Positions 25,377-60,500 are shown, counted from the stretch's first letter. The stretch is DNA of 64,000 nucleotides from Paragordius varius (GCA_964247055.1 OZ176054.1:3596001-3660000), one strand, 5' to 3'. Translations and numbers: made by a program. The notes: a model not told the origin generated them from the letters alone.

Positions 25377-26748
25377 TCAAAAAATTGGTGGAGGAGCATA
25401 ACACATTTTCATGCAATGACTCATTAAATCCTTTTCGTCAATTGTGATGTCGCAAGCAATAGTGTCATTTAACCATTCGGAAAAATTTTTGGTCACATCT
25501 AATTGTAATGTAATCTCCTTGAATACATTACTTCGTTCAACCTATTACACATATAAAGATTATGATATAACTATGAATAAAAACAATTTGGGCAAATATT
25601 TGTAATGGCTCGAAAATAATTTTCTTTTGGAATTCAAATCAAATTTCGACCCAGAATTTTTGCCATTAATGGGTCATGGTAAATGCTAAAATAAAATCAA
25701 AAAATACATATTATATTATTAATATAATTAAAAGAATAAAATAACATAAATTAGAGCACTGAGACTTATTATCTAAAAGCAATAAAAAAGGATTTTAATC
25801 ACAAGCTTGCCAATATTTTAATTCTAAAGTCATTAAACAGGGTATTTAACACAAAACGCTCCGACAACATGCGAGAAACTTAAATAATCTTATATAAAAA
25901 TAAAAAATCTAATTAACAAAATTTAAGTAGTATAAATATTTTTTAACAAAAACTTAAATAGTATTCGTAATTTTTTACAGTTAATGCCCATATAATTTCC
26001 CGTTGGTTTTTTTGGGGCCCTCGATTTTAGACATTGCTGATAAATATTATATACCTCTTGAAACCCAATTTTATGGAACAAATTGAGGCTGGCTATATTA
26101 TCTTCGGTAATTTTGGCAAAAAAATGCGACAATTCCAAATTATTAATACCATAGTACAGAAGTAATAGCAACGCTTCATAACCATAACCTTTTCTTCTAA
26201 TCCCGGGTTCCGCTATTAATAAATTAATTTCTGCACTATAAAGGGGATTACCTAACATTATTAAGATGTATGAAATACAGTTTAAAAACAAGTTCGCATC
26301 ACCAATCATGGATGCTACTTCATTTATATAAGTGCGAGTATAATTTTTATCTAAAGTTGTTGTGTTGACATCATTGTGTTCGTTAAAAGTGCTCAAAGGT
26401 ATATATTCGGCTTGATTTGATTGGGATGTAAGGAAAGGTGTAGATATCACACTTGTATTTTTACACACTTTATTATAATTTTTATATCTATCCAAATCCA
26501 AAATAATAAATGTACACTCTTGATTATAATATATAATAACTGTGATCATCTTCGAACCAGTTTTGACACATTTGATATTCTTGTTCAAGGGATAGAGGTT
26601 CACTTCCAGTTAAACGACAAAGTTCAGCATCAGTCATCCATTCATGATATCTTCATAATAATAAACCATACTTTTGGACATGTTCTTTTCGATAGGGTAC
26701 TAAAGCCACCTTCTTACCAAAAATATATGTATTTCGATTTTTACGCAT
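25377..26748 (-). CDS. NAT9: N-acetyltransferase 9-like GNAT protein (271 aa)
   Basis: complement(join 26748-26672, 26650-26541, 26518-26055, 25541-25377). Motifs [93 protein letters not shown]. Introns are 21, 22 and 513 nt. Confidence 0.93.
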
Positions 26749-27965
26749 TTTACCATATGGAGATCTTTTAAAAGATCGATACGTTTAAATTTTACCCCTT
26801 AATAAACTATTCAAATTTGGAATTCTTGCAAATATAACTCGATACAACATATTCATTTCAAACTAATTGCGGTCATAAAACCATTGCAAAAGTTTGCACA
26901 TATATAAAAGTGATGCACTGAAATATAAATAATGATCATTTAATTACTTTTTTTTATGGATAAACTCTTGCAAATTTAATCAGTATGTAATGTGTGATTA
27001 GCTAGGTATAAAAAACGCAAAACAAACCAGTTTTCTTTTTTGTACCAAAATTAGATGTGATAAAAAGTAACTAAGTTAGCGTTAGAATCAAATAAACACG
27101 ATATTTTGCAAAGATGTTGTAAACTAAAAATGACGTCCAAGTTTTCAAACTTTATTTCTTTATATGTATTTATATACATTTAATAGGATAGAAACAAATT
27201 TAAATTGGGATTGTTTCTTTCAGTATTTTTTTAAAAATATCATCTTAAATATAGTGTGGGGCCCTAGATACCCAAATTTGAATCTTTTATACTGATTTTT
27301 ATAAACAAATGATTTAATAAACAACAACGTTCAAAACAATTTATCCGGAACCACCGTAGTGATTGCGATTGTGTATACACGGATCATTTTGCACCTAACC
27401 CTTTTTTTCTTAAATACAAATTATTTTTTCTTGATTTAAAGTAATAAATCTTGACCGGAAAAGGGAATAGTGTGGTTTTTTAAAAATATCTTTTATTTCT
27501 TAAGTTTTGCCTGTATACCTTTAATTTCAATATAAACAACATAGTCTGCTTAACTTCGAAAGATTATAACACGAAAGTGTTATTCGGGAAAATGTATGAT
27601 GATCAGCATGATCTAATTAGTTTAGGCGCGTTCCAAAAAATCAATTTGGAGAACAATGTTTGATAATTAATTTTAAGTAGTTTATTTAGAAGATTAACGG
27701 GGTATAAAACTATTCCATTATGTCATCGCGGACAAAAAGATGAAAAGGTCATGAAGATTAAGTCTACTGCTTTATATATTTTCATAATCTGCAAAATAAG
27801 ATCAATATTATAATTGGTGTGGGTTAGGGCATCAATTATTTCACCAAAAAACTCATATAAACAAAAGCCTTTATGAGTATTTTAATTTCATATTTATTTG
27901 CCAAACCCATAGATAATACTTGTTTAAGATTTATGCTCAAAGTTTCATTTATTTATTTGTTGGTT

Positions 27966-57110: not shown

Positions 57111-57534
57111 TTAAAAATTTGGTCCAATATCTCTATTTTTAGCTAATTAATTTTCCAAAACCTAGGGAAATATAGAAACATATATTTTTTGCTGTTAGTT
57201 TTGATTTCAACATTAACTAGTAGAAAAAATTATCTAGCCTAAAAAATTTTAGAGTGAAAGAGATTTTTAAATATAAAAATTTTAAAATATATTTTAAACC
57301 GTTATCCTATAATAATATCCATGATAACAATTATTAAAATATGCAAAAACATATTGGATAAATAAACTTTAATTATATTTAATATATATTATAAATGAAA
57401 CTAACCTAATGTTGGCTATAAAATATATATTTTTTTTGTTTGGAATCGAAAAATAAATTTTATAAGCATATATAACCTTACTAGATCATGCGCTTTTGTG
57501 CTCGTACACAAAAATGCTGGATATTGTATAAGCT

Positions 57535-60500
57535 ATGATCAAGTTAAAAAGAAAAATAGGGAGTGGATCATTTGGCGACATATATTTAGGTATATTTGCA
57601 TTAAAGTTAGGCTATTCTACTGAAAATGATGAAGAGTATGCGGTAAAACTTGAGCATACATCAAGTGAGCATCCTCAATTAGCCATCGAAGTCAAATTTT
57701 ACAAATATATGCAAGGCATAAGTAAGGAGCAAATTTCTATTTATTATTTTTAATACACTAACTTATTTTTATTGTTATTTATACACTTTTTCCAATAATG
57801 TTTATTCATTAAATTAAAATGTTAATCCGGTTTTTAATTTACAACGTTTTATTCATTTATTATCTCTTGTGCAATTTTTGGTTTTTTTCTTCTTCGTTAA
57901 AAGAATGGAAATTGAAGTTTTGATTGTTTTAATCGTTTTCATTACATTGTGTCTAGTATTTTTAATATGCACTTACATATAATTTATTTAACCTTTAACG
58001 GGGTTTTGTTATAAATGATTACACATTCAATACATAATAATTTTTTCGATTCTTTTTTAATACCGTTTTGATTACCTTTTATCCAATTTGATTATTTTTG
58101 TATTGTTATCGAAAAAAAAGCTGGAATCCCACATCTTTATGCATTTCTCCAAGAAGGCGAATATAATATTATGGTATTTGAGCTTTTGGGACCGAGTCTG
58201 GAAGATTTATTCAATTATTGTCACCGAAAATTTTCGCTCAAAACCGTTTTATTGTTGGCAGATCAAATGGTAATATATATATATATGTTAGTCTACTAAT
58301 GTGTTTAACTAAAAAAATTATTGATTATTTTTTCGCAACATTTTGCATTTTTGTTAATGAATTTTTTTTCGCACATAATTTATATTTAGTAAAAAGTTAT
58401 TTTAAATTTTTAAGTATGAAAAATGTATAATGTTGATTGTTTCATTTTATTAATGTGCATAAACAGAACTCGCCTAATTTTTTAGCACTTATTATATTAT
58501 TTTAAATGTGCATTAAAATACATCAGGGCTGTCTATTTTTCATAATTATTTTATCAAACATTTTCTTGTTTAAATACCCCTAAAACACTAAACATTTTTC
58601 TAATTTTACCTGTAACGTTGCTCTCTATTTCTATGTGTTTTTGTCAACAAATTTGTAGATTGATAGGGTGCAAAGTATTCATAAACATTGTTTCATACAC
58701 CGTGACCTGAAACCGGACAATTTTTTAATGGGTTTAGGCCGCCGCGGAAACATTGTTTACCTGATTGATTTTGGATTGGCTAAACGGTTTGTCGATATTC
58801 GATTCATTCATATCCCATATCGTGATGACAAAAATTTTACTGGCACGGCTCGGTATGCCAGCATTAACACACATATGGGAATCGGTTAGTTTAATAACAA
58901 TTTTTTGGATTTTATGGTGTTTTAATTTGTTTAAAATTAACATAATAATACAAATCAAATGATTCATACATATACTATTATAATAATTATTATTATCATT
59001 GTTCAGATTATTTACGATTTTTTTATCATTCAACTCACAATATTAAAAGTAAAGTATAGGATTGTTTTATCATGACCAAATTTTGCTTCATATAATAGAA
59101 TTTTATATCCCTAGATACTTATTTGTTAAATACCATAGTGTTTGTTTTATCTGGCATTCTTTTTAAGGCTGGAAAGCAATTTATATGCTTGTTTTGGATA
59201 TGAGACTAAATTATATACCCTACCCCCTCTCATTTGCTTTTCCTCTTATTTAATGATTGTGTGTTTTTGTTTTAATATTCATATTTTTTTGTTATATGCA
59301 TATTACTTTTTTTCAAATATAGAGTTGTGTTATGTATTAATTTTGTTTTTTAGAACAAAGTCGACGAGATGATATGGAATCTTTGGGTTACATATTCATT
59401 TACCTGTTGAAAGGTTATCTCCCCTGGCAGGGTATTAAAGCGGCTACTAAGCGACAAAAATACGAAATGATTATGGAAAAGAAAACGACCATAAACGTCG
59501 ATGATTTATGCAAAGGGATTCCCAGTAAAACACATTTTTTTGATTATTCTAGCTAAATATATTTGAAGAATATTTTGCAGATATAAATCTTACTTCTTTT
59601 CATTTTAATTAAAATATAATGACGAAACGAAAAAAATAATTTTTTTATGAAGTAATTTTTGATCTATATATATAATGCAAGACATTAAATTATGGAATAT
59701 CTAATTGAGTGTTACCAATTTGCATCCACATTCCTTATTTCGCTAAAACTAAGGTGATCAAGATTTTTAGAAACATGGCTATTAAAAAATATTTGTATTT
59801 TGTTTGCTTTTTGTCTTTATATAATTACCCATGATTGGCGTTAAAGACCTGATTTTTTATGTCAACATTTTAATGTTTTCCTTTTAAAATTAACCGAATG
59901 ATTTGTAATATTAATAATTTTAATGTATTAAGAGTTTTAATAAATTGGGCAGTGTATATAACATATAAAATTATATAATATGATCAAATATATAAAAATA
60001 TATAAACCTGCTTATAATACTCTTAATTCATTATTTATATAAATATATAGATTAAAAAAATTTATTTAATCATCAATATTTTAGAAGTATTTTGTGAATA
60101 CATTAAATATTGTCGAAAGTTGGCATTTACGGAGGAGCCTGATTATCAAAAAATGCGATATAGTTTTAGAGCATTGGCTCATGCCAAAAAATACAGGTAC
60201 GTCTGTTTAATAAATCTTTTTCGTTTAAGAAGCATTATTATTTTGTAATTATTCACAAAAACAAACACATTATGTATATATGCAATATAAACAATATTTT
60301 TTCTTGATATTATCTTTCAATGAATTTTTGCACATCTATTTGGAATTTTAATCCTTAATTTTTAAATGTTGTATTTATTAAGAAATATTTTTTTTACTTA
60401 ACTAAGTTTTCGTTGTTTCACTAACAACTAATTTTTTCACTAACAACTAATTTGGTTACAGAGATATTTTCACTTTCTTCCGCATTATTAAAAATTTAAA

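Follow-up and report, generated by a model that had tools for sequence, protein, structure and literature searches.

Putative spliceosomal introns of 21-27 nt at ancestral intron positions, upstream of long introns, in a hairworm genome segment

Can a single animal genome carry spliceosomal introns of little more than 20 nucleotides (nt) beside long, repeat-bearing ones? This question is raised by a 64,000-nt stretch of DNA from the hairworm Paragordius varius (GCA_964247055.1 OZ176054.1:3596001-3660000; hereafter the window, with positions counted from its first letter), in which several ordinary housekeeping genes are interrupted by short segments that begin with GT and end with AG. The original prediction listed 19 such segments of 21-29 nt as introns of four genes, namely N-acetyltransferase 9 (NAT9), CCDC25, casein kinase 1 (CK1) and a TPR-repeat gene named TEX11. 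Seven of them (two in NAT9, four in CCDC25 and one in CK1) were found as described, bounded by GT and AG and 21-27 nt long, and were strongly supported by the analysis reported here. Ten more in the TPR gene were probable and one was possible; the full 19 were not reproduced. Sequence comparison makes it highly likely that these short segments are genuine U2-type GT-AG spliceosomal introns of ancient origin, shrunk to 21-27 nt with their original codon and phase kept.

The NAT9 gene is encoded on the minus strand (25923..26748, beginning with the ATG at 26748 and closed by the stop of its open reading frame, with the 3' end being a predicted model). Micro-intron 1 (26651..26671, minus strand, 21 nt) follows codon 25 in phase 2 and introduces an in-frame TGA if kept, and micro-intron 2 (26519..26540, minus strand, 22 nt) follows codon 62 in phase 1 and shifts the frame if kept. 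After both were spliced out, the N-terminus matched its orthologues residue for residue over the first 70 positions, and the spliced product could be aligned over its whole length with the orthologues P0002, P0271, P0224 and P0204, neither junction showing a gap. For the analysis of positional homology, orthologue loci were fetched and their exon structures were rebuilt by demanding translation to the recorded protein. The NAT9 genes of the tick Amblyomma americanum, the scallop Pecten maximus and the amphioxus Branchiostoma lanceolatum contained six introns each, and introns 1 and 2 of all three were located after codon 25 in phase 2 and after codon 62 in phase 1, identical to the sites of the 21-nt and 22-nt segments. 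The introns at codon 25 measure 660, 664 and 343 nt in tick, scallop and amphioxus, and those at codon 62 measure 81, 250 and 684 nt, respectively. The four further ancestral introns that these animals have towards the 3' end were missing from NAT9 in the window. At about 26300-26500 (minus strand), KCTFIILD is followed by an insert that is open and about 45 residues long; it contains much Asn and Thr, and none of the aligned orthologues has it. An 18-nt GT-AG segment after GFQE was rejected because its GT is part of a Val codon that is conserved and the alignment is better without splicing. A search with NAT9 exon 3 for loci of close relatives returned only a non-relative of 59% guanine plus cytosine (GC) content (L001) and an algal-type transcript.

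Four of the seven segments are located in CCDC25 (27966..29643, minus strand). Micro-intron 1 (29592..29618, minus strand, 27 nt) follows codon 8 in phase 1 and carries an in-frame stop if kept; micro-intron 2 (29518..29543, minus strand, 26 nt) follows codon 24 in phase 1; micro-intron 3 (29455..29477, minus strand, 23 nt) follows codon 37 in phase 2 and splits the Trp codon ahead of FHVDD; and micro-intron 4 (29299..29323, minus strand, 25 nt) follows codon 81 in phase 1 and splits the Gly codon after NSIK. They are followed by intron 5 (28242..29194, minus strand), which is 953 nt long, stands after codon 116 in phase 0 and has a repeat inside. With all five spliced, the product comprised 207 residues, aligned end to end with five orthologues without a gap at any junction, and ended in DDFM as the orthologues do. 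As predicted, splicing restored continuous frames and the conserved motifs KYHEWM, KCTFIILD, KYENEDLI, EDIWFHV and NSIKGNK in the two genes. The repeat inside intron 5 (28480-28881) had a DNA word depth of about 115 in DNA run X3, against 3-10 on genes.

Other eukaryotes also have introns at the positions interrupted in CCDC25. The site at codon 8 in phase 1 coincided with a 105-nt intron in L004 (insect assembly GCA_003676215.3, which we take to be an aphid) and with a 91-nt intron in L003 (fungal assembly GCA_000204055.1, presumably a rust fungus). In L004, the site at codon 24 in phase 1 was occupied by an intron of 3,251 nt, and the phase-0 site of the 953-nt intron at codon 116 by a phase-0 intron of 531 nt. 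A search with CCDC25 exon 4 returned 505 relatives with the NFACT-R_1 domain. The site at codon 37 in phase 2 corresponded to introns of 37 nt (L010) and about 510 nt (L011), and that at codon 81 in phase 1 to introns of 49 nt (L010) and about 257 nt (L011), both loci being from other eukaryotes. Furthermore, many genomic open reading frame (ORF) fragments of other organisms have an initial R or Q and then FHVD, which is the mark of reading through an acceptor at the site of micro-intron 3, and genomic ORF fragments of other organisms part from CCDC25 directly after NSI(Q/E)G, the site of micro-intron 4. An intron of the presumed rust fungus near junction 4 was left uncounted, being one codon off. 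The L010 locus (L010:1810-2050, Logan contig of SRR22387828; 42% GC) belongs to a eukaryote whose CCDC25 introns are just 37 and 49 nt long.

The frame of CK1 (57535..60898, plus strand, with an approximate extent drawn from the ORF map, solved CK1 structures and 210 metagenome relatives) is not broken by its segment. The micro-intron (57590..57610, plus strand, 21 nt) interrupts in phase 1 the Gly codon after DIYL and is in frame and stop-free, so that taken alone it could be a seven-residue insertion, and comparison with relatives was what decided the matter. On read-through, all but one of the six segments in NAT9 and CCDC25 shifted the frame or met a stop, which the CK1 segment did not. 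All 32 solved CK1 homologues showed a seven-residue gap exactly at 57590-57610. In a scan of metagenome contigs, the G-loop was separated from the VAIK strand by exactly eight residues in 75 of 80 CK1 relatives, the same number as in the spliced form. In addition, two metagenome loci had a GT-AG segment whose codon and phase agree with those of the CK1 micro-intron, with a length of 39 nt in L040 and 33 nt in L084. An ordinary intron (57722..58120, plus strand, 399 nt) follows as intron 2, and the spacing of the ORFs places later introns at about 390-540 nt.

That stop-free segments in frame are translated as coding insertions is nevertheless an alternative for CK1 and for a third candidate in NAT9 (26252..26278, minus strand, 27 nt), which is uncertain and was absent from the original prediction. 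The lengths of both are multiples of three, and lineage-specific insertions are frequent in AT-rich genomes, the open insert of about 45 residues in NAT9 being one at hand. For CK1, however, the insertion would fall into the turn between the G-loop and strand beta-3, whose length is constant among the same 75 of 80 relatives and 32 solved homologues, and it would happen to start with GT and end with AG exactly at the gap, where two other eukaryotes have GT-AG segments as well. The case against translation is weaker for the NAT9 candidate: its removal takes a hydrophobic insert of nine residues out of an acidic loop that has seven residues in tick, scallop and amphioxus, and none of these three animals has an intron at this position. 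Since the site is not ancestral, the candidate may have arisen as a micro-intron by gain or by sliding, or may be a true insertion. Translation of the in-frame segments is therefore judged improbable overall. The CK1 segments of the two metagenome loci (L040:865-1056 and L084:456-644; about 51% GC) are themselves in frame and stop-free, contain the branch-like CTGAC and TACTAAAC, and look like short fungal-type introns. The presumed start codon of CK1 is overlapped by a further 18-nt GT-AG segment (57526-57543, plus strand), whose splicing would make the upstream ATG at 57514 the start.

The dinucleotides at the ends of the segments carry little weight on their own because DNA of 27% GC abounds in GT and AG pairs with a spacing of 21-29 nt. 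The evidential weight lies instead with the gap-free alignment to orthologues and the coincidence with known intron positions, which extends to all seven segments. At these seven sites the introns of other eukaryotes range from 33 to 3,251 nt. Given their location at intron sites of other animals and fungi, the segments are almost certainly real introns, of a length below the supposed minimum of 30 nt in animals, and the sharing of the site by seven of the seven testable segments is unlike what random insertion, pseudogene decay or coding insertion would predict. Decay of the genes into pseudogenes, with the segments as random insertions or frame breaks, would suit the damage caused on read-through by all but one of the six segments in NAT9 and CCDC25. 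Each break, however, is bounded by GT and AG at an ancestral intron site and phase, apart from these breaks the NAT9 and CCDC25 exons are undamaged along the whole protein, the difference checked in exon 2 between two DNA sources (at 26595) is synonymous, and the same pattern recurs in four unlinked genes of one window. Pseudogene decay is thus very improbable.

The second DNA source was run X3, which carries a different label and comes from a different study; its contigs differed from the window by about 0.6% (about 99.4% identity). They were colinear with the window across all six NAT9 and CCDC25 segments, without any joint or deletion of 21-27 nt. NAT9 micro-intron 2 was tiled by two overlapping X3 contigs and micro-intron 1 was also present, with one difference from the window inside it (26666), and the change at 26595 in exon 2, from CTA to TTA, was found synonymous by hand from the gene model. 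Because X3 runs colinearly through these six segments, they are not assembly errors; the possibility of a sequencing artefact, named in the original prediction as a potential refutation, is refuted for them. Nothing was found in favour of assembly or sequencing artefacts, and the chance that they explain the segments at large is close to nil.

Excision at the level of DNA, as for the internal eliminated sequences of ciliates, was also considered. The segments fall in the size range of the shortest eliminated sequences of Paramecium, and programmed DNA elimination occurs in some nematodes. However, the segments end in GT and AG rather than in a TA repeat and are located at ancestral intron positions. 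In the X3 contigs the segments were always retained and no 21-27-nt joint was seen, which is a weak point because contigs lose rare forms. Such excision is hardly to be expected here.

In the TPR gene (43199..50728, plus strand), whose TPR-like features were indicated by a language-model search, a different approach was applied. A path of minimal introns, with GT-AG introns of 18-60 nt allowed, was traced from 43296 to 44889, and ten introns of 20-26 nt each were needed between 43365 and 44745. Their positions, all on the plus strand, are 43365..43389 (25 nt, with an interior GC content of 0%), 43475..43497 (23 nt), 43578..43599 (22 nt), 43678..43699 (22 nt), 43826..43848 (23 nt), 43930..43951 (22 nt), 44096..44121 (26 nt, the donor being GTAAGT; a start at 44102 gives 20 nt, and the frame is kept either way), 44237..44259 (23 nt), 44614..44636 (23 nt) and 44720..44745 (26 nt), the last one ahead of long introns that start at 44890. 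An eleventh, possible micro-intron (43215..43239, plus strand, 25 nt) would link a first coding exon of 16 nt, beginning with the ATG at 43199, to the open frame, the ATG at 43296 being an equally good start. Of the twelve introns originally predicted for this gene, ten were thus recovered, the eleventh is possible and the twelfth was not found. Two other candidates were rejected: 44756-44783 (28 nt), which is soon followed by a stop, and 43279-43310 (32 nt), an artefact of a path begun at the wrong ATG.

The weight of this path was assessed by replacing one intron at a time with random non-coding filler of the same length. GT-AG bridges no longer than 27 nt arose by chance with a frequency of 0.04-0.65 per junction, the values being fairly high for 43930..43951 (0.5) and 44614..44636 (0.65), and about 3e-8 jointly for all ten. 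When bridges of 18-60 nt were accepted, they arose in 28-100% of trials per junction with a ten-junction product of 0.04, so that continuity of the frame alone is weak evidence in this gene. No traversable path was found on the reverse strand, in five non-coding stretches of equal length or in most shuffles, and the three shuffles that could be traversed needed 15-20 introns. Because several junctions can be bridged by chance, individual boundaries may be wrong. There is an appreciable, though minor, chance that some of the ten segments are not introns or are bounded differently, the model being one of several paths that keep the frame: chance bridges of 18-60 nt are frequent, bridges of 27 nt or less arise at junctions 6 and 9 in 50-65% of trials, one junction can be closed in frame by either 20 or 26 nt, and no orthologue was aligned. 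Against this stand the joint chance, interiors of nearly pure A+T and lengths of 20-26 nt like those of the seven verified introns. The sequence pattern thus makes it probable that the micro-intron class is real in the TPR gene, where single boundaries may be off.

The name TEX11 was not sustained for this gene. Among 18 single-exon pieces, the best Pfam match, and its sole profile support, was SPO22/ZIP4 with an E value of 0.021 and 14.7 bits, below the cut-off of 27.5. The language-model search returned generic TPR proteins for one exon and, for the C-terminus, an SPO22 cluster at rank 52 with a score of 0.59. The largest exon retrieved no homologue when used as a query.

What signals would guide the removal of such segments? 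Counts were made on 17 segments, comprising the seven in NAT9, CCDC25 and CK1 and the ten in the TPR gene. All 17, of 21-27 nt, had GT and AG ends, and their interiors contained 16% GC compared with 31% in the flanking exons. The third base of the donor was A in 11 and T in six, so that all were A or T, and a G at position +5 occurred in two. The acceptors were TAG in 12 segments, AAG in four and CAG in one. At -7 to -9, A made up about 50%, and -3 was dominated by T; the enrichment of A is only suggestive of a branch signal. The CTAA motif, originally described as branch-like, was found in five segments where 1.7 were expected (P about 0.02), and its position varied. The looser branch motif YTRAY was not enriched. 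If the segments are introns, they would be removed by the ordinary major spliceosome via intron definition, with a donor signal cut down to GT plus A or T, an acceptor that is mostly TAG, no real polypyrimidine tract, and a branch adenosine probably located about 7-9 nt ahead of the AG.

Several points weigh against the segments being introns of this type. A clear branch-point consensus was not seen, CTAA being limited to those five segments, and all that is said here of the spliceosome is inference. The CK1 segment and the 27-nt NAT9 candidate, in frame and stop-free, could be translated. The TPR gene lacks an alignment to an orthologue, and its junctions include some that chance would bridge at the frequencies given above. 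Three RNA runs of the same species label (X6-X8) yielded no contig on 25800-29800 at 80% likeness, with just a chance match of 18-19 nt, and contained 0.00 of the words sampled from the CK1 region. The label of these runs may cover another organism, or these genes may be unassembled there. As a separate observation, DNA run X3 is about 99.4% identical under another label while the same-label RNA runs are nearly empty for NAT9, CCDC25 and CK1, and labels and organisms may not match.

Does the size of these putative introns reflect a general compaction? The intron lengths in the window fall at 21-27 nt (17 or 18 segments), with none from there up to about 100 nt. The longer introns measure 127 nt and more in a ZSWIM8-like gene, 399 nt and about 390-540 nt in CK1, 953 nt in CCDC25 and about 1.2 kilobases (kb) in a carbonic anhydrase gene. 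Long introns therefore do stand beside the short ones as originally claimed, that of CCDC25 with its high-copy repeat. General compaction was not found: the introns of 399 and 953 nt are in the same genes as the micro-introns, and the window contains hAT elements, high-copy repeats and long intergenic stretches. In all four genes with micro-introns, these are located towards the 5' end and ahead of the first long intron, and the exons around them are as short as 25-48 nt. Introns of ordinary size, from about 100 nt to several kb and in some cases with transposons, come after them or are found in adjacent genes. One gene might be read under two regimes of intron recognition, a start-proximal intron definition that handles runs of 21-27-nt introns (for example, one dependent on the cap or on promoter-proximal polymerase) and a regime past the first long intron in which only ordinary introns occur. 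This proposal would account for the strict micro-then-long polarity in the four genes, and we regard it as tentative and rather doubtful.

How would such introns compare with the shortest ones described so far? Dicyemids have small, compact genomes in which short introns are the norm. The ultra-short introns of Dicyema japonicum are GT-AG and mostly under 30 nt (Lu et al. 2019 and Zverkov et al. 2019, via PMC13644364). The segments of the window resemble them in being GT-AG and under 30 nt, in an approximately 'GTa' donor, a weak acceptor, the probable absence of a polypyrimidine tract, conserved positions and a parasitic host. In contrast to Dicyema, the micro-introns here stand beside transposons and, in single genes, beside introns that measure from 0.1 to several kb, and occur only upstream of the first long intron. 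In a survey of 51 animal genomes (September 2026, PMC13644364), introns under 30 base pairs (bp) were found only in myxobolid myxozoans and Dicyema, and Nematomorpha are not mentioned in it. The donor is reduced to 'GTa' in both groups, and myxozoans have canonical U2 small nuclear RNA (snRNA) and U2AF (PMC13644364). Given this canonical machinery, the known cases lend no support to the modified spliceosome proposed in the original prediction.

The myxobolids (Henneguya, Thelohanellus and Myxobolus; PMC13644364) are similar to the hairworm in size, with median lengths of 22-27 nt, in the reduced donor and in the argument from conserved positions. They differ in being cnidarians with compact genomes (about 20-200 megabases (Mb), with relatively few transposons) and Iso-Seq-validated introns, whereas those of the window are known from DNA sequence; moreover, their short introns have short neighbours (PMC13644364), in contrast to the abrupt change from micro-introns to long introns inside single genes here. 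Ciliate introns (Paramecium, about 25 nt; Stentor, 15-16 nt; PMC5014332, 10.1101/2021.08.05.455221) share the size, AT-richness, GT-AG ends and intron definition, but belong to unicellular organisms with gene-dense macronuclei in which nearly all introns are tiny and kb-sized, transposon-bearing introns are absent. Human ultra-short introns (43-65 nt; PMC4463651) are likewise rare short ones amid long introns, but their length is double that of the segments in the window, there are few of them, and they make up no distinct class at 21-27 nt.

A literature search returned no paper that joins Nematomorpha with 'short introns', the hairworm genome paper of Cunha et al. 2023 lying outside it. The introns proposed here would represent a third animal lineage with introns under 30 nt and the first with a large, transposon-rich genome, in which the layout is sharply micro-then-long. 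If true, this lineage, an ecdysozoan one, would have shortened introns to the extreme without genome compaction, and one spliceosome would handle 21-nt and kb-sized introns in one transcript, so that an animal would offer a test of how closely donor, branch point and acceptor can be spaced. The 5' polarity of the micro-introns could point to a mechanism.

There are also consequences for annotation. Aligners and gene finders with a minimum intron of about 20-40 nt break or miss such genes. Given introns this short and exons of 25-48 nt, the gene counts, BUSCO scores and claims of gene loss for hairworms may need to be re-examined. As a corollary of the tentative two-regime proposal, part of the 'rampant loss of universal genes' and of the BUSCO value of about 70% in hairworms could be a failure of gene finders. 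The published genome of Gordionus montsenyensis (26.93% GC, 63.8% repeats, BUSCO 71.6%) was annotated with STAR and BRAKER, and introns are not mentioned anywhere in its paper. The window agrees with that genome in its GC content (27.2% throughout) and in its many DNA transposons.

The remainder of the window was surveyed for its other genes and elements. No snRNA or splicing-factor gene was found in the scan of the window, in which a tRNA-Met (41148-41219) was the sole match of Rfam or ARAGORN, and an exact look-up of one window ORF and of protein P0003 returned no record. Two long ORFs of hAT-type transposases (30344-31403, minus strand, and 38214-39582, plus strand) are situated between CCDC25 and the TPR gene. 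The genes of the window are of animal type according to the ORF map. The ZSWIM8-like gene occupies 1-24 kb on the plus strand; both the part of it within the window and the alpha-carbonic anhydrase gene were checked and contained no micro-introns. The latter gene (Pfam E value 1.6e-30) starts within 50728-50950, only about 100-200 nt beyond the end of the TPR gene, with a first coding exon of about 530 nt followed by the intron of about 1.2 kb. Between NAT9 and CCDC25, a high-copy repeat (27006-27273) reached an X3 word depth of about 2,500, against the 3-10 seen on genes.

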